Positions 7,501-38,000 of a stretch of DNA of 64,000 nucleotides are shown piece by piece. The notes beneath the pieces are model-generated. The model did no database searches and was not told the DNA's origin. It saw only the letters and a list, made by a program, of their open reading frames with translations. Source of the stretch: Oikopleura dioica (Eukaryota > Animalia > Chordata); the NCBI GenBank assembly GCA_907165135.1, contig OU015568.1, positions 16,255,208-16,319,207 on the forward strand, in the 5' to 3' direction. A program made the translations under genes and the position numbers. Within the stretch, counting starts at the first letter, position 1. Each line of letters starts with the position of its first letter.

Positions 7501-10461
7501 AGTTTGCTTGTGGTACAAATATTATTTCATCCCTTTTTTCTTGTTTTTGCAGATTTCTGAAAGTCTCATGTCTTACCTTTAAATAATTCCTTGAGATCGG
7601 GACGGTCAAGATTATAAACCCGGCGGCAACGAATAACATGGCTTTTTGGATTCAAAAGACCATATTTTTGCGTATTTTCAACTTCTTCCGGACTAGACTT
7701 GGCGACCTGCGCAGAAAACCTGACAAAGGGTTCTGAAGCGCGGCTTTTCATTAAAGCTCCTTCAGAGCCCTAAGTCAGGTTTTGCACACAGGTTGCATAG
7801 CTCCCTGAACTTTGACTATAAATAAGATAGGGCTACCGTGGGCGAGAGATATCACGACGGAGTCAGAAGGCCCGGGCCGGGAGTTTGAATATTTCGCGCA
7901 CATTCAAGTATTTTCCCATGCCTGATGGAGGACTTTTATCTGGTGGAAGACCCAATTGATGGAAGATAGGTCTAACCTAGACTCTATAAGATGAATTAGA
8001 TTTTTACTTATAAATAGATAATAATTTAAAAATCTTGATCATGTGACTCTTGGATGACCCCTGGAGGACTTTTTCTGGTGGAAGACCGGCCTTCCTGGAA
8101 GACCCTTAAGATTCAGCCACCTTCCATGATTTTTAAATTTAAGGGGCTTGTCGGGCCGTCTCAGCCCCGTCTCTGGCAAATTTAAATTAAGGGGCTTGAC
8201 GGCCCTTCGGGCCGTCTCAGCCCCGTCTCTGGCAAATTTAAATTAAGGGGCTTGACGGCCCTTCGGGCCGTCTCAGCCCCGTCTCTGGCAAATTTAAATT
8301 AAGGGCTTGACGGCCCTTCGGGCCGTCTCAGCCCCGTCTCTGGCAAATTTAAATTAGGGGCTTGACGGCCCTTCGGGCCGTCTCAGCCCCGTCTCTGGCA
8401 AATTTAAATTAAGGGGCTTGACGGCCCTTCGGGCCGTCTCAGACCGTCTCTGGCAAATTTAAATTAAGGGGCTTGACGGCCCTTCGGGCCGTCTCAGCCC
8501 CGTCTCTGGCAAATTTAAATTAAGGGGCTTGACGGCCCTTCGGGCCGTCTCAGCCCCGTCTCTGGCAAATTTAAATTAAGGGCTTGACGGCCCTTCGGGC
8601 CGTCTCAGCCCCGTCTCTGGCAAATTTAAATTAGGGCTTGACGGCCCTTCGGGCCGTCTCAGCCCCGTCTCTGGCAAATTTAAATTAAGGGGCTTGACAA
8701 TGGCTGGGAACTCCGAGGTGATCAATCTCAGTCCTCAACCCCGCCCACACCCATCGTTTTTAAAATTCAAATTGACAAAGTTTTCAATTATGTTATGGTT
8801 TTGAATATATTTTTTCAATTTAAAGATTTCTTTTATTATTATTTACAAATAATTATTATTAAGTTTATTCATTATTACTAAATGAAAGTCAAAGTTATAA
8901 GAATTGAAGGAGGAAGAAGTTTCTTTGGTCAATTATTGAGAAAGGTGAATTGTGAAAAATGTTTCTAGACGGGGGGTTGTTGTTGTTCTTCGCGGAGGAC
9001 CCACTCCCACGTGGCGCAAGATGCGCGCCAAAAAGAGCAAAAAGATTGGGACGAGAAAAACACGCGCAAATGCCCCAATCTATTTCGCCCTCCGTCGTGA
9101 AATCTCTCGCCCACGGTATAAATAAGAAGGGCTTATCTATCCAGCAGATAGAGGACCAAATGCAGAGAGAAGTGGCTAGTTAAAATTTTTGCTGATTAAA
9201 AATTCAGAATCCGATTCCAATCGTGGAGCGCTGCTTCGAGCAAGGGCATCGTCCTCAATGGTCGTTTTATCTCGTTCGGGTGCTCTTTCAGGGCTGAGTG
9301 CTTGTTTTCTCGCTGATCGAATGTAAAATCTGAACCACTAGAGCGTGGCAAGTAACGAGGGCCTGATTTATTTTCTGTAAGTACTTTGGCAATGGCCTTG
9401 TTGACAATGACTTGATGAGAGATGAGGAACCAGAATAATTAATAAGATAATATCGAAAGCGATAAAATATATATACACTTAATAATATAAGCAATTAAAT
9501 AACCAATCAAACATGCTTGCTTACTGACTAGGTGTTTACGCAAATTTTATATTTTATATACGGTATATTATATATACGGTATATATCGTATATAATATAC
9601 CTCATTTGTAAATGACTACTTTGTCCGCCTACGTATTTACGGTATATATCATACATGCCGTAAATAAAATACGTAGGCGGACAAAGATGTCATTTAGAAA
9701 TGAGTATCGCAGTATAATATGCTTTGATTCTAGCGCGACCAAGATCGCTTTCTGAAAATTGTGACTAATCCTTTGTTTATTTCCAATCAGAAGGTAGCTT
9801 ATTGTAATTTTGAGGTGCCAGATCGCAGCCTTCTGATTAGACATAAACAAAAGATAATTCACATTTTTCAGAAGTAGATTGAGTTCGTGCGAGAATAAAG
9901 AAATAAAACATGTCATATGTGTTTTTATTTCGACGTTTCCATGAATAACAAGTGTTTTTCCTTGAATATGACTGTAACTCAACTAATGACCATCTGTGAT
10001 GATACAAATACATCATTTATCATCGTCAATTTTTACTTATGGAAATAAATAGACCTTGCAGGTCCACAATAAAAAAAATATGCCAAAAACAGAACTTAGC
10101 AGGAATAGATGAAGCTCCACATTGAATACCTCCTGTTTTTTAGCGACAAGCAAATTGAAAACTGTGTATGTAGGGCTCCGCCCTAGAAAGGATAAAGGAG
10201 AGAAAATCCTGCTTCTTTTCATCAAAAAAGAAACCCGAAAAGAAAAGTTCAAAAAACTTCATACAAAATCGGCAACCCTTTCTGAATAACGACAACTCGC
10301 GCTTTCGTGTTGATCTTTGGCGAGGCAATATGCGCACAGAGACAGACAGATGTCGGCCGAAGGCATTTGACGCAGCTTTTGCGGCAAAATTCGCCAGGTC
10401 GATCGCTCAGAATTTCCTCTTCTTCGAATAAATCATCGCCAAAATCTACATCTCCGATCAT
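4570..10461 (-). CDS. DTWD2: DTW-domain protein (tRNA aminocarboxypropyltransferase, DTWD2-like), 7 exons
   Basis: CVKCLRPTSVCLC, HPNEIKRPLRTMPLL, LLFP, IDGTWRQA, YIIRTQP..STLEA and APLRALCAIQLEHGA in the expected order. Confidence 0.88.
4895..5325. mobile_element. Degenerate foldback element in a DTWD2 intron
   Basis: Imperfect inverted arms of ~150 bp or more (AAGGAAGTTGAAAAATGC / GCATTTTTCAACTTCCTT). Confidence 0.65.
6002..6382. mobile_element. Foldback element with a nested CCTGAGTCAGG-family MITE (~6156-6241)
   Basis: Outer inverted arms (AAACGCTAGATTTTCT / AGAAAATCTAGCGTTT); inner TIR GGGCTTGGCCACCTGTGG / CCACAGGTTGCCGAGCCC. Confidence 0.7.
7834..9118. mobile_element. Non-autonomous TIR element carrying a satellite array
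   Basis: 29-bp TIR TACCGTGGGCGAGAGAT(A/T)TCACGACGGAG; TAAATAAGA direct repeat near both ends. Confidence 0.8.
8141..8698 (+). repeat. Tandem array, about 10 x 56 bp, hairpin-containing
   Basis: Unit AAGGGGCTTGACGGCCCTTCGGGCCGTCTCAGCCCCGTCTCTGGCAAATTTAAATT. Confidence 0.97.
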
Positions 10462-21868: not shown

Positions 21869-22470
21869 CCTCCTTATTCAAATTTTAATAGTGAAAACCT
21901 ATTGAAATCACTTAAAAACCGTCATTTTGAAAGAACCCCTACAACCCCCTACTAGGGGGTTGTTCTTCCAGTTTTCCCTAACGGGGCTAGCTACCTTTGA
22001 GGAACCCCTGCGAGAAATTTTTGTTCGCGATGTCGAGCATCTTGGCCATGTCGTCGGTTTGGACGATTAGATTGTCTTTCTGGCGTTACTGAATTGACAT
22101 TCAAGCCTATTTCAATATTTGACCTTCTCTTTAGCAGCGGGAATCTTGCTTTTATTTTGCACAAAATTTAATTTTGCCGCAATATTCGAAAAACAAACGT
22201 GCTTTTTTTCTAAAAAGAAAGAATGAGCGGTTTTCACCCGCGAGGATTGACGAGAGATGCCGTTGAGAAATGGCTGAAAGATTTTAAGAAGAAATTGAAA
22301 AGAACGACGAGCAGAGGTGATTTGGATAGACTGATTTTGTCGGTGGAGAGATACGAGTTTGAAGATGATTGGTGTGCTAAATGGGAGGAGGTTATTTTTG
22401 AAAATGGAAAAGGAAAAATTATGACAGGATTTGCGAATGAAGAATGGAAAATAACTTCATTTCAAAAAAT

Positions 22471-22814
22471 GATGATTTTCGAAAAATTTTTCAGGCCAAA
22501 AATCACTTTTTAACTGTTAGTGCCATCTTCACCGCCGTCTCAAACCGAGTCGAACGGTATATGTATGGCTTGAAAATTCTAGAGTTTCGGGTACTTCCGG
22601 TCAAATTTACGAAATTCTAGTATTCCACTGCCGTTTTTGATACAGAAATGGTACCATGGCATATGGTATGTCAAAATGACCGCTAGGACGTGAGGAATGC
22701 AGGGGTCTCAAAAAGCCATACATATACCGTTCGACTCGGTTTGAGACGGCGATGAAGATGGCACTAACAGTTAAAAAGTGATTTTTAGCCTGAAAACATT
22801 TTTCGAAACTTATC
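22471..22814. mobile_element. GAT...ATC MITE inserted in an exon
   Basis: Long TIRs, AAAT TSD; removal restores FQKMILDRNP, matching the paralog FQKTIIDKNP. Confidence 0.88.
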
Positions 22815-23171
22815 AAATGATCCTCGACAGAAATCCTCAATTAGAAGGAAGACAAATTCAACGCTCGGAACTCAAAGAAGAACCTGGAGAATGGATTCTA
22901 AATGAGTTTCTTCAACAAAAAATAATTTCAGCCGGAGGAGAAGCGATTGCTTTGAAAGAAATGTTTGGAGAACTGAAAGTAGCGGTTCGGGTTCAGGCTT
23001 TTGATTCAGCGCTTTTTACAGACGTTGATGAGGAGTTGACGTTTGAGATTAATCTCTCGAAAGGTTACTTTTTTATAAAATTTTTCAATTTATCAATCTA
23101 GATTACGAAATCGCCGAAAAAGACGAAAAAGACGACGCTCCAGTACTCCCTGTTCATCCAAACGTGATCAA

Positions 23172-24121
23172 TAGGTAAACTTGATGAAAAATGAGCTCTT
23201 TTTTGAGCTTTCAATATAGAGAGTTTAATACATTTTTAGAATCCCCAGAAGCTTGGGATCATTTTGACTATTGATACTTGGGGTTTGGTTCATGCCCTGA
23301 GGCGTTTTAGGTCTTCCAAAGTCCAAAAATCGGGCAATCTCGGTGAAATGGCCATAACTTTTGTTCTCCCCACTTTCTGATGATGCTAAGCATCTCAACT
23401 TGTAGCTGGGGTTCTGACGGTTCAGAATCTATGTAGAAAACTACCGGACACCCCCATTCTAGGGCCCCTAGAACCTCTAGAAGTTAGGGAAGTCCACCGA
23501 AAATCGGTACTTTTCAACTGAAATGTTGTAAAAGGTGTAAATTTTTGTCCGAAATCGATCAGAACTCGATAAAATCGGCTCTCTGATGTCCAAAATACAG
23601 TTGCAAGGCATCGAAAGTCACTTCAAATCAAATTATGTGCAAGAAAAAAAATTTCATAAAAACTCACCCGAAGTACTCTATAATGACCCCAAATATATTT
23701 TTGAGGTCACAAAAACGATTTTATTATTCCTAGATCGTTTTTGTACAGAAATATATCTGTTTTACCATATTTTAGTAAAAAGTACCGATTTTCGGTGGAC
23801 TTCCCTAACTTCTAGAGGTTCTAGGGGCCCTAGAATGGGGGTGTCCGGTAGTTTTCTACATAGATTCTGAACCGTCAGAACCCCAGCTACAAGTTGAGAT
23901 GCTTAGCATCATCAGAAAGTGGGGAGAACAAAAGTTATGGCCATTTCACCGAGATTGCCCGATTTTTTGGACTTTGGAAGACCTAAAACGCCTCAGGGCA
24001 TGAACCAAACCCCCAAGTATCAATAGTCAAAATGATCCCCAGCTTCTGGGGATTCTAAAAATGTATTAAACTCTCTATATTGAAAGCTCAAAAAGAGCTC
24101 ATTTTTCATCAAGTTTACCTA
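23172..24121. mobile_element. 950-bp hAT-type foldback MITE in an exon
   Basis: Near-perfect arms of ~340 bp starting TAGGTAAACTTG; perfect 8-bp TSD GTGATCAA. Confidence 0.95.
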
Positions 24122-26205
24122 GTGATCAAGAATTTCTGCAACATCGAAATTTTCTTGAGCAAAGACGAGAAAAGACAAGACTGCCTTGGGTGGATTACGA
24201 TTATGGAGAAGTGCGACGGCGATTTGAGGAGCGGATTGAAGAAGGAAGATTTGAGCTTGGAAGAGAGGAAGAAAATTGCGATTGGAGTGGAGAAGGGAGA
24301 AGAGTATTTGAAGAGCATTGGAATTTTACATCATGATCAGAAGCCGGAAAATATTTTATTGAAAAATGAAGAATGCAAATGGATCGATTTTGGAACAATT
24401 GAAGAAAGAACTGGAAGGAAGAGCTATCGAAAGATGGGCTACGTGAGAAGAGGGAGCAAATATAGATTTAATAAACATTTATGTAAGTTTTAAAGTCTAT
24501 GTCTTCGAAAATGTTTTTTCGAAGATGCTGGATCTGCTGCTTTTTCGGACAGTTTTCAACTTTTTGGAGAAGGAGGAGGAGATGCATCATCACTTCACAT
24601 TCTGATTCTTTGCGATTGGAAAACAGCGTGGAGTCTTCTTTATAAACCAATTGAAGAAGACGAACGAGAAAAGATCAAAGAAGAATTGAAGGCGAGTCTT
24701 CAAAATTTATTGCTTTTAAAGATAACACTCATAAGGCCTGCAATGCTGAGAGGCTCTTATATAAAGGCAAATTCGGATCAATCAAAACTCCCTCAACCGA
24801 AGAAATCGAGAACTTGTCAAAAATAATTTCTCTAAAAATGCGTCTTCTGATTTTTGTCTTGACGATCCAAATTTAACAAAGTCTTCCGCGATGGCCAATC
24901 TCAAGCAAAAACTGACGAGACAGATGAATTTCGACTTCGAAAATTTGACGAAGAGAGTTTTAAACCAAAAGAAAGCGATCTTTGTGTCCCCATTTCAGTT
25001 TCCGTTCTTTTGAGATGGGCACTCCAAAATGATTTGAAAGTTGATGATTGGAAAATGAATGCATATTTAACTCTCGAAAACATCTTCACAAATATGACAA
25101 TGGTTATTTATCCGCGGAGTTTGGCAGGGTTAAATCTCAACCCCAAAAATGGAGAACAAGAATTTCAAACAAACGAAATTGAAATACTTCTAAGAAGAAT
25201 GAAGTTCGGAACTTATTTGAAACCAAGCGGGTGGTAAATTATCATAAAAGATTATTTTCGAGTAAAAGGCGATTTTAATTTTGAAAAAGGTTTTGATGAA
25301 ATTATTTCTTGAATTTAACTAAAATAATTATTCAAGTCTTCCTCCACCACAACTTCGCCTTCACCCGCCCCTTAACAGTCACGGGCGCCTACCTGAATCC
25401 CGACGGCTCAATAGTTTTCCACCAAATGGTTCTTGACCGAATCGAAAACTCCGAATTCATTCTCCAAAACACTTTAATCGCCCATTACGGCTCCCAAATC
25501 AGAATTCCTCTTTCTCGCGAATTCTACGCTTTTTACGAAATGATGGAAGATTGCTTCAATTGCTACAACGATTATGTTTACTACGGGCCAAACAACGAGT
25601 TTTCTGCTTTGACGAACGAACATTTCAACATGGAAACTGAAAAATGGTTTCTCCTCCCTCAAGCGTATTCAATTACTCTTACACCTAAATAAACAGTAAG
25701 CATTTATCACACAACAAATATCACTTGGATACTATCAAATTTTCAGGGGTAGAGCTTCCATCATCGCTTTTGCCGCCAGAATCGCTTTTTTATAAAGAGT
25801 TCTCTCGTGAAATTTCACTGCAAATAGAAAACAGTCCAAGTTTAGTTTATATGCATATTAAATAATAAATGGAATCATAGAGAAGTAAAACTGAAGAGCT
25901 CAAGCAGGTGGCGAAATTGTCAAGCAGTAGAAGCCCTGCTTCTATAAATTAATTGCCATAAGGAATCTTCGATCTTTCTTACCATTCTTCATATGTCGTA
26001 TATATTATCATTGAGAAGTATATGACATAATGTTTTCGCACAGTTTATCATATACGAAAACAAATTATTTGCTCCACCTGTTATCGGAGAAAGGAGAGTG
26101 GCGTCTCTTTAATTCATTGCCAATGAATCATTGGCGTCTCCCAAAAAATGTTAAAAGACACGCCATTCTCTTATCTCCAAATTTCTCCCAAAATCACCAG
26201 CTTAA

Positions 26206-28769: not shown

Positions 28770-31358
28770 TAGGGGGTGCACAGTGGGAAAATCGATTTTT
28801 TATCATCCTCTTATAGGGATGAATGATACATCAATTGAAAGCCTATGATCCACTGATCATTTTGACATGTGACTTGGGGTCATTGAAGGTCACCTGAGGT
28901 CACCTGAGGTCAAAATACGATTTTTCTCAAAACCGATTTAGATTAGGGATTTTATGCATAAAATTGATCGCTGATGATCACTGATCATTTTATTCGTCAT
29001 AAAAACCCCATCCGGATCCATCCTCATCCATCTGAGGGAAAAAATAAAAAATCATTAATTTCACTGTCAAAACTTTTTTACAACTGCTTTTACTCAAGAG
29101 AAACACGTTATTTAAGATATTTGTCGACGTCTCATAAAAACCATAATTAAGAAAAAAGCAAGAATTACTTAAATTTTCATATAAACGGGTGTGGGTGGGG
29201 TTGGGGACATAACTGAGATTGATCAACTAAGAGTCCCAGGCCTCTGTCAAGCCCCTTAAAATTAAAAATCAAGGAAGGGGGCTGAAACGGCCCGAAGGGC
29301 CGTCAAGCCCCTTAAAATTAAAAATCAAGGAAGGGGGCTGAAACGGCCCGAAGGGCCGTCAAGCCCTTAAAATTAAAAATCAAGGAAGGGAGCTGAAACG
29401 GCCCGAAGGGCCGTCAAGCCCTTAAAATTAAAAATCAAGGAAGGGGGCTGAAACGGCCCGAAGGGCCGTCAAGCCCTTAAAATTAAAAATCAAGGAAGGG
29501 GGCTGAAACGGCCCGAAGGGCCGTCAAGCCCTTAAAATTAAAAATCAAGGAAGGGGGCTGAAACGGCCCGAAGGGCCGTCAAGCCCTTAAAATTAAAAAT
29601 CAAGGAAGGGGGCTGAAACGGCCCGAAGGGCCGTCAAGCCCCTTAAAATTAAAAATCAAGGAAGGGGGCTGAAACGGCCCGAAGGGCCGTCAAGCCCTTA
29701 AAATTAAAAATCAAGGAAGGGGCTGAAACGGCCCGAAGGGCCGTCAAGCCCTTAAAATTAAAAATCAAGGAAGGGGGCTGAAACGGCCCGAAGGGCCGTC
29801 AAGCCCTTAAAATTAAAAATCAAGGAAGGGGGCTGAAACGGCCCGAAGGGCCGTCAAGCCCCTTAAAATTAAAAATCAAGGAAGGGGGCTGAAACGGCCC
29901 GAAGGGCCGTCAAGCCCCTTAAAATTAAAAATCAAGGAAGGGGGCTGAAACGGCCCGAAGGGCCGTCAAGCCCCTTAAAATTAAAAATCAAGGAAGGGGG
30001 CTGAAACGGCCCGAAGGGCCGTCAAGCCCTTAAAATTAAAAATCAAGGAAGGGGGCTGAAACGGCCCGAAGGGCCGTCAAGCCCTTAAAATTAAAAATCA
30101 AGGAAGGGGGCTGAAACGGCCCGAAGGGCCGTCAAGCCCCTTAAAATTAAAAATCAAGGAAGGGGGCTGAAACGGCCCGAAGGGCCGTCAAGCCCCTTAA
30201 AATTAAAAATCAAGGAAGGGGGCTGAAACGGCCCGAAGGGCCGTCAAGCCCTTAAAATTAAAAATCAAGGAAGGGGGCTGAAACGGCCCGAAGGGCCGTC
30301 AAGCCCCTTAAAATTGAAAATCAAGGAAGGGGGCTGAAACGGCCCGAAGGGCCGTCAAGCCCTTAAAATTAAAAATCAAGGAAGGGGGCTGAAACGGCCC
30401 GAAGGGCCGTCAAGCCCTTAAAATTAAAAATCAAGGAAGGGGGCTGAAACGGCCCGAAGGGCCGTCAAGCCCTTAAAATTAAAAATCAAGGAAGGGGGCT
30501 GAAACGGCCCGAAGGGCCGTCAAGCCCTTAAAATTAAAAATCAAGGAAGGGGGCTGAAACGGCCCGAAGGGCCGTCAAGCCCTTAAAATTAAAAATCAAG
30601 GAAGGGGGCTGAAACGGCCCGAAGGGCCGTCAAGCCCTTAAAATTAAAAATCAAGGAAGGGGGCTGAAACGGCCCGAAGGGCCGTCAAGCCCTTAAAATT
30701 AAAAATCAAGGAAGGGGGCTGAAACGGCCCGAAGGGCCGTCAAGCCCTTAAAATTAAAAATCAAGGAAGGGGGCTGAAACGGCCCGAAGGGCCGTCAAGC
30801 CCCTTAAAATTAAAAATCAAGGAAGGGGGCTGAAACGGCCCGAAGGGCCGTCAAGCCCCTAAAAATTAAAAATCAAGGAAGGATTTTTGTCTTCCAGGAG
30901 CACTCTTCTACCTGAATAGTCCTCCGGAGGACAAAAAAATGACTCACCCTAGATCACATGATCTGTGTTGATCATTTTATTGGGAAAAACGGTTTGAAAA
31001 AATGTTATCGTCGGGATTCGAACACCCGACTTGGCCGAAAAGTGAAGGTTTTTGACAAAGAATCGGCTCTAGAATTTTTGCCGGAAAGTGCCGGATACCA
31101 TTTTGGGGTCAAATTAAAGCTCTTTGTTTACTCTCTTAGATGCACTTTTCATTTTTTATAACCTTTAATATCTTGGGAGTAATTTGCTAAAAACCCCTTT
31201 TCTTAACCTTTTCACGTGATTTTCAGGGTAAAAATGGACATTTATGAAAAGATGATAATTGAAAGAAATGATTGTTAGGTTATAACAAAGTCATTCAAGA
31301 CTTTAAAATATCAAAAAGATAGTTAATTTTTTGACATTATCCCACTGTGCACCCCCTA
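28770..31358. mobile_element. hAT-type non-autonomous element carrying a satellite
   Basis: TIR TAGGGGGTGCACAGTGGGA; perfect 8-bp TSD CTCATAAC. Confidence 0.92.
29245..30882 (-). repeat. Tandem array, about 28 x 57-58 bp, hairpin-containing
   Basis: Unit (+) GGGGGCTGAAACGGCCCGAAGGGCCGTCAAGCCC(C)TTAAAATTAAAAATCAAGGAA. Confidence 0.97.
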
Positions 31359-31803: not shown

Positions 31804-34529
31804 ATGAGCGAATTTTACCCAAAAGAATTGACCAGAGACGCTGTTCAGAAATGGTTAGGCGCTTTTATAAGGAAATTGAAGAGAACGACGAGTAGAGACG
31901 ATTTGGACAGATTGATTTTGTCGGTGGAGAGATACGACTTTCAAATTAAAAGGTCTGCTGGATGGGAGGAAATATTTTTTGAAAATGGAAAAGGAAAAGT
32001 TTTGAGTGAACATTATGGAACAAAACAAGAGGAATGGGAGATATCTTCATTCCAGAAAACAATCATTGACAAAAATCCTCAATTAGAAGGAAGAAAAATT
32101 TTCCGTTCAGAACTCAAAGAGGAAAAAGGAGAATGGATTCTCGATGAGTTGCTGCAGCAAAAAACAATATCAGTTGGAGGAGAAGCGATTGTTTTGGAAG
32201 AAAATATCGCTGAATTGGAAGTTGCGGTTAGGGTTCAGACTTTTGACTCGGCGCTCTTTGTGGAGAATGAGGAGTTGGCTTTTTACATTCATCTTTCTTC
32301 TGGTAATTTTAAATTTTTATAATCTTTTAATTTAATTGAAGACTACGAAATGGCTGAAAGAAGAACTGCCGGGGAGAAATACTCTGCCTCGCCTCCTGGT
32401 ACTTTACCTCAAAAAAGAAAAAGACTACGCCCCAGTTATCCCTTCTCATCGAAACGTGATCAAAAATCTCTGTAATATCGAAATTTTCTCGGGCAAAGAC
32501 GAGAAAAGAGAGGACTGCCTCGGATGGATTACTATAATGGAAAAGTGCGACTGCGATTTGAGAAGCAGATTGAAAAATGAAGATTTGAGCTTGGAAGAGA
32601 GGAAGAAAATCGCGATCGGCGTGAAAGAGGGCTTTAAATATTTGGGGAGCATTGGACTTTGGCATCAGGATCAGAAGCCGGAGAATATTTTATTGAAGGA
32701 TGGAGAAGGCAAATGGATTGATTTTGGGACGATAAAGGAAACGTCTGAAAGGGAATGCTATCGAATAATGGGCTACGCGAGGAAAGGGAGCAAATATAGA
32801 CCAGGGATCTATTTTTTTGGACTATCCCAATTTATGGAAGTTCATTTTTGGATAACCAATAAAATTACTGAATTCGGCCTTCCGGCAAATGAAAACCCTG
32901 ACCCATAAAATCACTTCCACAAATTGGTTTAACCCATTTTTTCCTGAAAATCGCGAGTAGCGAATATCTTGCGATTGCGGTGCGAAGTTTCCCAGAAAAC
33001 TCGAGATAATGGAATCGCAATCGCAGCTTAGTTTTCGTCAATATTTCACAAATTGCGATTTGTTTTCAAGTTTTTGTCTCGTGCAAATGCTTCGACGATA
33101 TTCTGACCTGAGTTTAGTTTGACTCAGAGCTTTTTTCTGTTTTAAAGGCTGAACAGAAAGCTAGGCTTCAAAACATATTCCTTTCAATAAAGATTTTTCA
33201 ACAAAACTTTATAAATCGCAATCGCATCGCAATTTTTGTAATTTTTTGAGTCGCAATCCCGATTGGTTTTCAAAAATAAAGATCCATGATACAGACATTA
33301 TCATTATTTATGTAGGTTTTATGTTGGAGTTATTTCAAATAACTTATTTGATTATTATTTGCTCGCATTTTATTTTCATAGATTCAGGATCAGCTGCTTT
33401 TTCGGGAAGTGACCAACTTTGTGGAGTAGGAGGAGCACATGGATCACCACTCCACGTTCTGATTCTTTGCGACTGGAATACTGCCTGGAGTCTTCTTTTT
33501 AAACCGATTGAAGAAGACGAGAGACAAAAAATCAATGAAGAAATTATGGTAAGTCTTCATTGTCGCGTTAGAAAGAATAATGATTCTCCAGGCCTGCAAT
33601 GCCAAGTGGCTTTCAAGAAAGACTCCCTCAACTCAACAAATCGAAAACTTGTCAAAAATCATTTCTCTAAAAAACGCGTCCTCTAATTTTTGCCTGGACG
33701 ATCCAAATTTGACGAAATCTTCGGCAATCGCAAATCTAAAACAGAAGCTGACAAAACAGATCAATTTCGACTTCAAAAATTTGACGAAAAATGTTTTAAA
33801 CCAAAAAGAAAGCGATCTTTGTGTTCCCATTTCAGTTTCGGTTCTTTTGAGATGGGCACTCAAAAATGATTTGAAAGTTAAAGATAGTAAAATGAGAAAA
33901 TATTTTACTCTCGAAACAATCTTCACTCAACTGACAATGATAATTTATCCGCGAAGTTTGGCTGGCTTCAATCTCAACCCAAAAAAAGAAGAACAAGAAT
34001 TTCAAACTAACGAAATTGAATTGCTGCTCAGAAGAATGAAATTCAAAACTTATTTGAATCCAAGTGGATGGGATATTATCACACATTCACGCTTACGAGT
34101 GGAAGGCGATTTTTATTTTGAAAAAGGTATTTATGAAAATATTTCGTGAATTTAACTAAATTAATTATTCTAGTCTTCCTCCATCACAACTTCGCCTTCT
34201 CCCGACCCCTAACCGTCACCGGCGCCTACCTCAATCCCGCCAGAGAAATAATTTTCCACCAAATGATTCTTGACCGAGTCGAAAACTCCGAGTTTATTCT
34301 CCAAAACACTTTAATCGACCATTCTGGCTCTCAAATCAGAATTCCTCTTTCCCGTAAGTTCTACGCTTCTTACGAAATGATGGAAGATTGCTTCAACTGC
34401 TTCAAAGATTATGTTTACTACGGGCCAAACAACGAGTTTAATGCTTTGACGAACGAACATTTCAACATGGATACTGAAAAATGGTTCCTTCTTCCTCAGG
34501 CGTATTCAATCACTCTTACACCAGAATAA
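31804..34529 (+). CDS. Atypical protein kinase fused to a papain-fold cysteine-protease-like domain, copy 2
   Basis: GGEAIV, VAVR, HRNVI, MEKCD, HQDQKPENILL, DFG; C-terminal NQKESDLC and FHQMILDRVENSEFILQN; carries one exonic MITE and an unexplained frame break near 32360-32415, so integrity is uncertain. Confidence 0.75.
32802..33288. mobile_element. Aged hAT-type MITE in a kinase exon
   Basis: TIR CAGGGATCT / AGATCCATG; TSD ATATAGAC / ATACAGAC; removal restores KYRHYHYL, aligning with the paralog KYRFNKHL. Confidence 0.8.
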
Positions 34530-35006: not shown

Positions 35007-38000
35007 TTAGAGAAGACATCCTTGGCATGAGAGTGGATCGCTGCAGGGCTCGCCCGGGTATTTGTCGGATGGAGTTACTCCAGGAAGACTCGAAGTGATG
35101 AACTAAAAATATTGTAAAATCATCGAAAATTCAAATTTTGAATCTTACTTCTTCGCCATCTAGCGAGAACACGAAATCGATGAAGCCTCCGTCCCACACA
35201 TTTTCCTCCGTCGACTCCAAATTCAAAGTCTGCTCCGCATCAGCCGTTGAATCAACCCGATTGAATGGAGTCTGATGAAAGTAAGTAGACTTGAAGTTAC
35301 GATTAAAAATAAACTTACGAAATCTGGTCTTAAATTCGGCACAATTCCGGGAATTCCTTCAGCTCCACAGACAGATGCGCCGGCGTAGTAAATCTGTCGC
35401 CAATCGCGTTTTCCGTTCTTTGACTTTCTTGAGAATGATCTCGTCGATTCTGGCGCCAATGATGATGTCGCAGATAGCGTCATGGAAGATACAGTCTCGT
35501 TGAAAGACGTCGTAATCGAGGGAATCGTCTCGGGCGCAGAAAGGAAAGCCTTGTAAAGCGCGGTGACTGACTGCCAGAGGCGATCTTGAGTATTCTCTTC
35601 CATCTCTCCCACATCTTGAACGGCCGTTCTCGAGATTTTGTCCGAAACACTGGACTCGTCCCGATCCCAACCTCCCCAGCTGCCGCCATGCGCCTGATCG
35701 GGAAGAATTCGCAAAAGCTTCTTTCCGGGAAGCATGTCCCAGTAAGAGAGAGGACCATCAAAGGGGAAGAACTCGTCGTTAGCCGCGTTAGTGATGTAGA
35801 TGAGCTGATCGGCGTAGCGGGAAGCGTACGTCAGGGGGTCGAAAACGGACATAGCCAGTTGCATTGGAAGAGTTCCAAAGTAAGCAGGAACTAAATCATA
35901 TTTTATTCAAGGCATTTGAGAAAGAAAAACAAACCTTGATGGTACCAGTAGTCAAAGAAGGTGTAACTCCAGCCAGCTAAGTTTCTTTGCGACATCTTCA
36001 TAAACTCGTCCGAGTTGAGCATATCGAACATCAACGGCGCGTTGAAATTGACTCGCTCGAAATCCGCCGCTGCGGCGAGCCAGTTTGACCAGCCACGTTT
36101 CGAAGCTCCGATCAAGCCAGCTTTGAAGGGATAATTTCCTGTTTTTGGAACGTTTCTTCTGCCATCAAATCTAGCGCGCGAATAGTCGCTTTTGCCATAA
36201 CTGGTTGGCCGAGTTGATTGAAGTCTGGGGCTCCTCCCATCACGCTAGTGATGAAGTTCTTCCAGGCCTGCGCTAGAACTCCGTCCGAGTGTTTGCCAAA
36301 GTACTGTCCCTCAACTCCGTAGATGAATGGATCACTTGGCGAATCGGCGGTAAATCGAATTGGATAGTTTGGATTTTGATTGAGCAGGCCGCAGACGACG
36401 CCAGTTTTGATTGCGAAGGTTTTTGTTCGCGGAAGATCTTTTGCATACTCTTCCTCGAGAGATCGGCGTTTTCGGGCTGGTTGGATGAAATTGCCGAAGT
36501 TGGAAGACTGAAGGAAGAAGGAGTCGGGATTGCTGATGGCTTTCGGAACGATCAGGTGAACGATGTGGGTCCAAATGGGCCTGTCGTTTACGGATTCATC
36601 GTTCCATCGCAGAGAAGTCATGTTGTAGTTGTAAGTTGTCACATCTTCTTCTTCTTCAATGTCAATCAAGTTGTAAGAAAAACGTTGTCTTCGGCCCACA
36701 TGATGCTGTCAATAAACGCAGGCGCGTGTGAGTTCTTCTTTGTGATATCCTCAGCGAAACTTGCAACAAGCGATTGCAAATTTTCCAAGTTAGAATCAGC
36801 TCGATGTTCAAGTTGAACAGTAGCAACTTGTTCGACTTGGCCGACGAAGGAATCTTCTAAGAAGCCGCTTCGAGATTCTTGCGGTCGAGTTGTCTTGAAC
36901 GGCTCGCTCGATTTGAAAACACGCGGGAGGAGTTTTCTTAAGGCATTTGAGTCTTGTTTCGTTGGAGTCACCACGTTGAATTCATCAGCTTTGGTTTCAA
37001 CGACAAGGAGGGCTTCGAGGTTTTCTTGGGAAGAGATGAAGTCGTTTAGTGCGCTAGCTTCCCAAGTCGAAAGAGATGAAGCGCCAGAGTACTCGTTTGA
37101 GCATGGATCGTCGCTGACTTCAAAGTTGACGTCGAAATTTCGCGTCAAATCGGTACCAACACAAACTGAGTTCGCTTCCCTCGTTTTTGTCCAGTATCGG
37201 TCATTATTCAGGGCGTAGTCGTAGCCGGATGGATTTGCCACTGGAGCTATGATGAAGTTCATTCCAGGAAAATCCTCTGCGAAGTTGTTGTTTTCGGCCA
37301 AGTCCGCGCAAGTTTTCGCGCTTTCGAAATCGTTTGCGCGCATTCCGCAGACGATCATTACCGTGGGATTGCTTCCTTCATTCAATTGGATCGCTTCTAA
37401 TTTGTTTCCTGAATCGTTGCTGTTCAAATCGATGATTTGAGAAGATCCGGGAGCGTTATTTTCTAACGATGTGATGATGCTACTGTAGCTCTTGTACTGC
37501 GAAAGGTCCTTTTTCTAATTCCGCTGCACTTTCCAGCGTGGTCAGCCACGCGCATAAGCTTTCGAGTCTGTGGTCCTAGCTTCTGCATTAAGCGCTTATT
37601 TGGGTAGCCCGCAGTGCAGCCATAATCCCGCGCGTAGCTTCTAATCATCGCTGCAACACTGTCGACTTCCTGGCAGAGCCCGCCCATTGCTCGGTCAACA
37701 GCGGCTTCGGCGGGAAGCGAGCATGCAGAAGTGTTGATATCGGCGAGTCCTTTGGCGAATCGGTTGACCCATTTTTTGACTTTGTTGAATTGGCCTTGGC
37801 TGCCATTCTGCTCGACGAGGGAAAGGAGATTGTTTGCACGGGAGCCGACTTCGGTAAGTCTTTCTGCTGCGGATCTAAATTTAATGTTTCAACTGATTTA
37901 AAAATAACATCGCTATTTCGAAATTCAAAAGAAGGGTTTATTTGAGAGCAAAACACTGGATTGACGCGTTGTCAGGAAAAATGCGGCTCGTGGCTAGACG

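Follow-up and report, generated by a model that had tools for sequence, protein, structure and literature searches.

Organisation of the locus

The window, a 64,000-nucleotide stretch of Oikopleura dioica DNA (contig OU015568.1, positions 16,255,208 to 16,319,207), sits on a 17.1-Mb scaffold of the OKI2018_I69 assembly. The plus strand at positions 31804-34529 holds a gene for which we derived a five-exon model by comparison with paralogues. Exon 1 (31804..32302) starts with the ATG and encodes an N-terminal alpha/beta region of about 120 amino acids without known family, followed by the kinase N-lobe (SVGGEA at 32170, VAVR at 32221). It is separated by intron 1 (32303..32341; 39 nt, GT-AG), whose position is conserved across the family, from exon 2 (32342..33311), which encodes the hinge, the catalytic loop HQDQKPEN (32663), DFG (32720) and the activation segment, and which suffers two interruptions. 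Intron 2 (33312..33381; 70 nt, GT-AG) also lies at a family position, and RNA reads from a paralogue are spliced at the same place. Exon 3 (33382..33548) covers the P+1 loop and the alphaF region and lacks both the APE Glu and the alphaF Asp. Introns 3 (33549-33591) and 4 (34127-34173), plus-strand family introns placed by comparison with paralogues, flank exon 4 (33592..34126), which encodes a conserved linker, the oxyanion Gln (33802), the nucleophile Cys (33820) and the YPRS and GW motifs. Exon 5 (34174..34529) supplies the His (34257), the Asn (34305), the remainder of the papain sheet and the stop.

The original prediction, made from the letters of the DNA, was of a cytosolic kinase fused to a papain-fold protease. 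Its three kinase motifs and four catalytic residues were all verified in the sequence, with Gln-Cys and His-Asn spacings of 6 and 16 codons, and the papain tryptophan positions are empty, there being no Trp after the Cys and none two residues after the Asn. Neither a signal peptide nor a membrane helix was found (highest 19-residue hydropathy 1.1), as expected of a cytosolic protein, and Pfam gave no match to an I29 prodomain. Database searches were run exon by exon, exon joins serving for frame checks only; exon 2 matched the Pfam Pkinase model with 41.3 bits (cut-off 31.7).

On the opposite strand, positions 35223-37427 hold a zinc carboxypeptidase (M14) exon and then PhoPQ_related (PqaA-like) exons. 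A 55-bp satellite of 29.6 copies occupies 29246-30882, about 900 bp upstream of the reported gene; at 8151-8698 there is a 56-bp array related to it (about 77% similarity) that runs in the inverted orientation.

Integrity of the reported copy and its upstream neighbour

That the reported copy is intact, as had been implied, is put in doubt by two inserts in exon 2. The first (32359..32410, plus strand), of 52 nt, is private to this copy and shifts the frame unless it is spliced out. The second (32802..33296), of about 490-495 nt, is composed of two dispersed repeats with 60 genome matches; its inverted ends are imperfect, an 8-bp near-duplication resembles that of a target site (32794-32801, 33289-33296), and it is located 15 nt before the family donor of intron 2. 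Aligned to close neighbours, neither insert is present in the compared paralogues, and the exon junction distances of the reported copy are outliers (187 nt versus 133-150 nt, and 601 nt versus 75-97 nt). With only the four family introns removed, the reading frame stops at codon 211.

From these observations, we lean, without great assurance, towards the reported copy being a recent pseudogene. Rescue by non-canonical splicing has, in our estimate, somewhat less than an even chance. The 52-nt insert is in principle removable, either through one of the open GA-AG options, which are 55-64 nt long, or through a GT-AG option of 37 nt, and a candidate GA-AG intron at 32806-33294 would preserve the frame across the repeat insert. 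Non-canonical introns make up 11% of those in O. dioica (PMC8008620), and the GA-AG type is common in the species (PMC8008620; PMC7072748). None of the RNA reads, which come from another strain, matches the reported copy at ≥99%. A long period of decay finds no support: the private changes of this copy are mostly constrained (dN/dS of 0.21 in the kinase and 0.40 in the protease, from small counts), and any death must therefore be recent. The reported copy is a poor choice for assays; its neighbour L002 (G000:C1:16356935-16359101) is better suited as it lacks both inserts, and it shows no stop in the exons checked.

The tandem paralogue upstream (22223..25692, plus strand) is a pseudogene. All four of its Gln/Cys/His/Asn residues are kept, as had been noted, but its damage is not confined to the single-base frameshift then recognised: beside the 1-bp loss near 24970 there is an in-frame TAA at 25235, between the Cys and the His, and two inverted-repeat insertions (about 22466-22824 and 23172-24121). 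The latter is a foldback element of about 950 bp in exon 2 of the pseudogene; its inverted arms are long, its target duplication of 8 bp is exact, and a related element occurs in the paralogue L062.

A large gene family in O. dioica

A search of the 64,281,565 bases (19 contigs) of the genome returned 136 matches to exon 1, 137 to exon 4 and 125 to exon 5, far beyond chance. Because a split copy contributes several counts, the 125-137 matches correspond to roughly 100 genes. As matches to the three exons are mostly adjacent and in the same order, the fusion is family-wide; kinase and protease exons are genuine neighbours, as predicted, and not a juxtaposition peculiar to one locus. We conclude that O. 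dioica harbours a family, so far undescribed, of about 100 genes in which a degenerate kinase is joined to a papain-type cysteine protease. Our literature search, which covered few subscription papers, found no description of the family and no other animal fusion of a protein kinase to a papain-type protease. The homologues that carry names in the databases are O. dioica proteins. A homologue search with a 635-residue read-through paralogue as query gave no scored match. Two annotation matters may be recorded here: in exon 2 of the paralogue L019 the frame is offset by one base within an A-run, which could be an assembly error, and the OKI2018 annotation joins family exons to DnaJ-like sequence in CAG5114306.1, which is probably a gene-model fusion.

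The median pairwise dN/dS (0.21 for the kinase, 0.27 for the protease) indicates purifying selection on the family. Such values, of 0.2-0.3, together with four conserved spliceosomal introns, largely refute the idea that these genes are selfish, or the cargo of mobile elements, and do nothing for the host, which we regard as very improbable. The idea is prompted by the roughly 100 dispersed copies, many of them struck by repeats, yet neither a transposase nor shared terminal repeats were seen around the copies. It also has against it that a pattern-based search of viral_contigs and genome_contigs, weak for distant kin, found no viral or prokaryotic relative, a result on which we likewise reject a viral or prokaryotic origin.

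Within this overall constraint, 14 of the 20 fastest-changing sites fall in the kinase C-lobe exons, which hold 30% of all sites, according to a crude parsimony site count that undercounts saturated synonymous change and in which 0 sites are significant after correction for 620 tests. They are placed at the end of alphaE, on both sides of the HxD His, right after DFG, in the activation loop and in the alphaEF-alphaF region, positions that we take from standard kinase anatomy to be mutually close, and they thus appear to be clustered around the activation segment. Broken copies are frequent and some copies have Cys changed to Ser, which is compatible with birth-and-death evolution. In four members (L009, L027, L031 and P0088) the frames are open and Ser replaces the catalytic Cys; these may be pseudo-protease partners or decoys.

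Poly(A) and single-cell reads from another strain match conserved segments of the family at 85-99%, and some span the position of intron 2 without the intron, which a contig from another run retains. The family thus includes members that are expressed as spliced transcripts.

A second animal lineage

Among 1.84 billion representatives searched with a profile, 205 matched, including a distant set that aligns to the family with a probability of 99.6% and forms a separate branch of the tree (support 100/97). The family is thus not restricted to O. dioica. The distant sequences lie on contigs from marine metagenomes that have a GC content of 29-40% and short GT-AG introns, and one metagenome contains at least 24 distinct family loci. 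The host is an animal, judging from an adjoining dystrophin gene whose three pieces are 65-68% identical to O. dioica dystrophin, versus about 43% and 61% identity to the mammalian protein for two pieces; on this sequence evidence we think it quite likely to be another larvacean. We conclude from the contigs that this second animal has its own expansion of genes with an ankyrin-like, kinase and protease order. The Ank matches upstream of its kinase are weak (E 0.001-0.01, below cut-off), and the reported copy has none; nor did the second animal's profile find ankyrin-bearing members in the O. dioica genome. No homology was detected between the N-terminal region of the O. dioica proteins and the pre-kinase region of the second animal. 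As the best O. dioica matches of the second animal's kinase are the family loci, the fusion is most likely older than the separation of the two lineages.

Several features of these contigs deserve separate mention. One locus of the second animal (L073:403-3455) has a kinase, a protease, a kinase C-lobe and another protease in tandem, the first protease lacking the His and Asn and the second having both. At another (L076:5717-8805), a family gene has as its neighbours tandem genes that encode decapeptide repeats and a 3CxxC zinc-binding domain. Sequences from other samples (P0200, P0213 and P0221, and P0226; loci L075, L120 and L078) form a further sub-branch and may represent a third or fourth species.

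The protease domain

The original prediction hinged on a papain-like fold. We modelled the domain in the paralogue L013 (74-76% identity), its two protease exons being read through an in-frame intron, from an alignment of 119 rows. The model reached a pLDDT of 84.5 and a pTM of 0.81, confidence being low only at the ends, in the read-through intron and in the linker (pLDDT 49-69), and it is indeed papain-like: Cys52 begins a central helix (52-67), His198 lies within a strand (195-206) and Asn214 follows a strand (209-213). The best 50 matches listed by VIA are all papain-like, among them Der f 1 (Z 10.8, rmsd 3.5 over 159 residues), xylellain (Z 10.7) and the C39 peptidase of PCAT1 (Z 9.6). 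Nearly all Foldseek rows are papain-like too, with staphopain first at E 0.011 and no row reaching E 0.001, while most of the ten nearest Atlas rows are C39-like. A distant homologue, whose model comes from the Atlas, has the same papain-like fold.

The catalytic set does not vary freely among paralogues: in counts that cover about 49 loci and are biased toward close copies, Gln is conserved in 42 of 42 distinct loci, Cys in 41 of 45, His in 45 of 47 and Asn in 44 of 47, and Val follows the Cys in 44 of 45. The Cys is likewise present in 80 of 84 database homologues. The papain-like spacing stands for the reported copy, but the His-Asn distance, described as exact, varies in homologues from 18 up to about 30. 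In the second animal, the protease has HAV and IKNS, as in papain.

Assignment to a named family fails. Pfam and PDB sequence searches with the protease domain and exons returned nothing significant; the phytochelatin synthase model PF05023 scored 12.2 bits against a protease exon (cut-off 24.9, E 0.1), and Peptidase_C1_2 matched a single distant homologue (E 0.03). The domain shares with the C1A peptidases (Der f 1, xylellain, cathepsins) the fold, the order Gln-x5-Cys, His, Asn and a T-x-x-V-x-D-Q lead-in. It is, however, only 11-15% identical to them and kinase-fused, and it has no Pfam Peptidase_C1 match, CGSCW, Trp26, Trp177, signal peptide or I29 prodomain; because these C1A hallmarks are absent, we regard it as a new clan CA family and not a cathepsin. 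With C39 and C39-like domains (PCAT1, ComA) and the C47 staphopain it shares a compact papain core (PCAT1 rmsd 2.9), but it matches no family HMM, has no transporter, carries a long helical insert after the Cys helix and uses Asn as its third residue where C39 uses Asp, and membership of C39 or of the phytochelatin synthases is rejected on the same grounds. On the model, then, the domain is a putative clan CA papain-like protease outside the named families.

A papain fold need not imply an endopeptidase, and the domain might instead be an isopeptidase for ubiquitin-like tags, or a deamidase or acyl-transferase acting on proteins recruited by the kinase. The missing C1A aromatics around the active site would suit such an enzyme, as would the weak match to phytochelatin synthase and the occurrence of ATG4, UfSP, Mug105, USPL1, phytochelatin synthase and CD lyase in the same fold list (Z 6.6-9.1). 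The best fold matches, however, are C1A and C39 peptidases (Z 9.6-10.8), and the Gln/Cys/His/Asn set with the IKNS of the second animal is C1A- and staphopain-like; the transferases of clan CA mostly use Asp. We therefore consider a non-endopeptidase rather unlikely, and continue to treat the domain as a cysteine protease.

The kinase domain

The N-terminal 440 residues of the paralogue CBY13560 were modelled apart from the protease (pLDDT 88.8). The model resembles protein kinases in general (Foldseek E 2e-9) with no family prominent, IRAK3, a plant RIPK and others scoring Z 12-13, and with the Pkinase HMM match we assign to the domain a predicted bilobal eukaryotic protein kinase fold. The Arg at the position of the VAxK lysine, first noted in two copies, is family-wide in O. 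dioica (28 of 28 rows at this beta3 position). HxDxKxxN and DFG are kept, the catalytic Asp in 40 of 42 and the DFG Asp in 40 of 40, and the catalytic Lys and Asn are nearly invariant. Three further landmarks, the APE Glu, the alphaF Asp and the Arg of PxxR between alphaH and alphaI, have been lost alongside the change of Lys to Arg. The related second animal keeps all of them, its kinases having the beta3 Lys, HLDxKxxN, DFG, SPEQ, DNYSxG and PxxR.

In an ordinary kinase the substrate-binding C-lobe is braced by the APE Glu, the alphaF Asp and the PxxR Arg. Their joint loss argues against an active atypical kinase in O. dioica that, with Arg for Lys, would turn the protease on through phosphorylation of itself or of the linker, as the canonical kinase of the second animal probably does. 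Such a possibility would fit the near-invariance of the catalytic Asp, Lys, Asn and DFG Asp, but we judge it improbable. KSR2, which has the same beta3 Arg, binds Mg-ATP, which suits the nucleotide-binding role proposed below; the weak activity that it retains also speaks for an active kinase (PMC4718504). The likeness to the KSR1/2 pseudokinases extends to the retained catalytic Asp, Asn and DFG Asp (PMC4718504). The family, however, lacks the KSR domains, whereas KSR has a complete C-lobe and no enzyme module; we see here a parallel and not kinship.

A putative sensor-gated protease

The architecture, predicted folds, residue conservation, purifying selection and two separate expansions described above are the starting point for a proposed mechanism. 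We infer that the kinase-fold domain of O. dioica would be a nucleotide-binding switch or sensor and not an ordinary protein kinase. The diversifying surface around its activation segment may read a ligand or foreign protein; sensing would lift a restraint imposed by the conserved linker, and the freed Cys-His-Asn domain would then cleave either itself or some target in the cell, the most likely purpose being defence. Our leading reading, to which we give somewhat less than an even chance, is thus a cytosolic sensor-gated protease of one chain (N-terminal region, kinase-fold domain, linker, clan CA peptidase) whose role is most likely defensive.

The logic would be like that of RNase L or MLKL, except that the output is a protease. 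In RNase L, IRE1 and MLKL, a kinase-fold domain switches an effector in the same chain, and the second animal, with its weakly ankyrin-like upstream region, may have the analogous order of ankyrin part, kinase and effector. Here, in contrast, the gating is putative, the effector is a cysteine protease and there are about 100 genes versus one; an RNase L-type KEN ribonuclease is excluded, the C-terminal domain being papain-like instead. Plant kinase-fusion resistance proteins and NLR families likewise form large birth-and-death families, with a (pseudo)kinase joined to a fused domain and a variable surface. Both lineage and fused domain are unrelated, however, and no NLR partner was seen for the family.

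The same switch and protease could serve a developmental or reproductive role, in the turnover of the oikoplast house, in gametes or in self/non-self recognition between cryptic species. Reproduction and house building, too, can employ large families that evolve fast, and diversification suits recognition of any kind; moreover, reads are present in unchallenged poly(A) and single-cell libraries, and the youngest clusters lie on PAR and X-specific scaffolds. The absence of a signal peptide, however, speaks against a secreted house or gamete-surface enzyme, and two separate expansions with many dead copies seem more typical of conflict genes. We therefore find such a role unlikely, though the strongest of the competing accounts, and prefer the defensive sensor-gated protease. 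More tentatively still, and as a possibility short of probable, we hypothesize that the genes constitute a cytosolic immune receptor family of the larvaceans' own, whose papain-fold executioner is controlled by a diversifying kinase-fold sensor in the same chain. It would have expanded separately in two lineages, its kinase in O. dioica having become a nucleotide-binding pseudokinase and the ankyrin-like part having been dropped.

The O. dioica genome is known for compaction and gene loss, and nevertheless it maintains about 100 copies of this gene under selection. The second animal provides a natural comparison, since one architecture contains a canonical kinase there and a Lys-to-Arg pseudokinase in O. 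dioica, and the conversion of kinase to pseudokinase and the gating of the protease are thereby directly testable in a laboratory chordate. If the family is defensive, it would represent a new kind of animal sensor-executioner.
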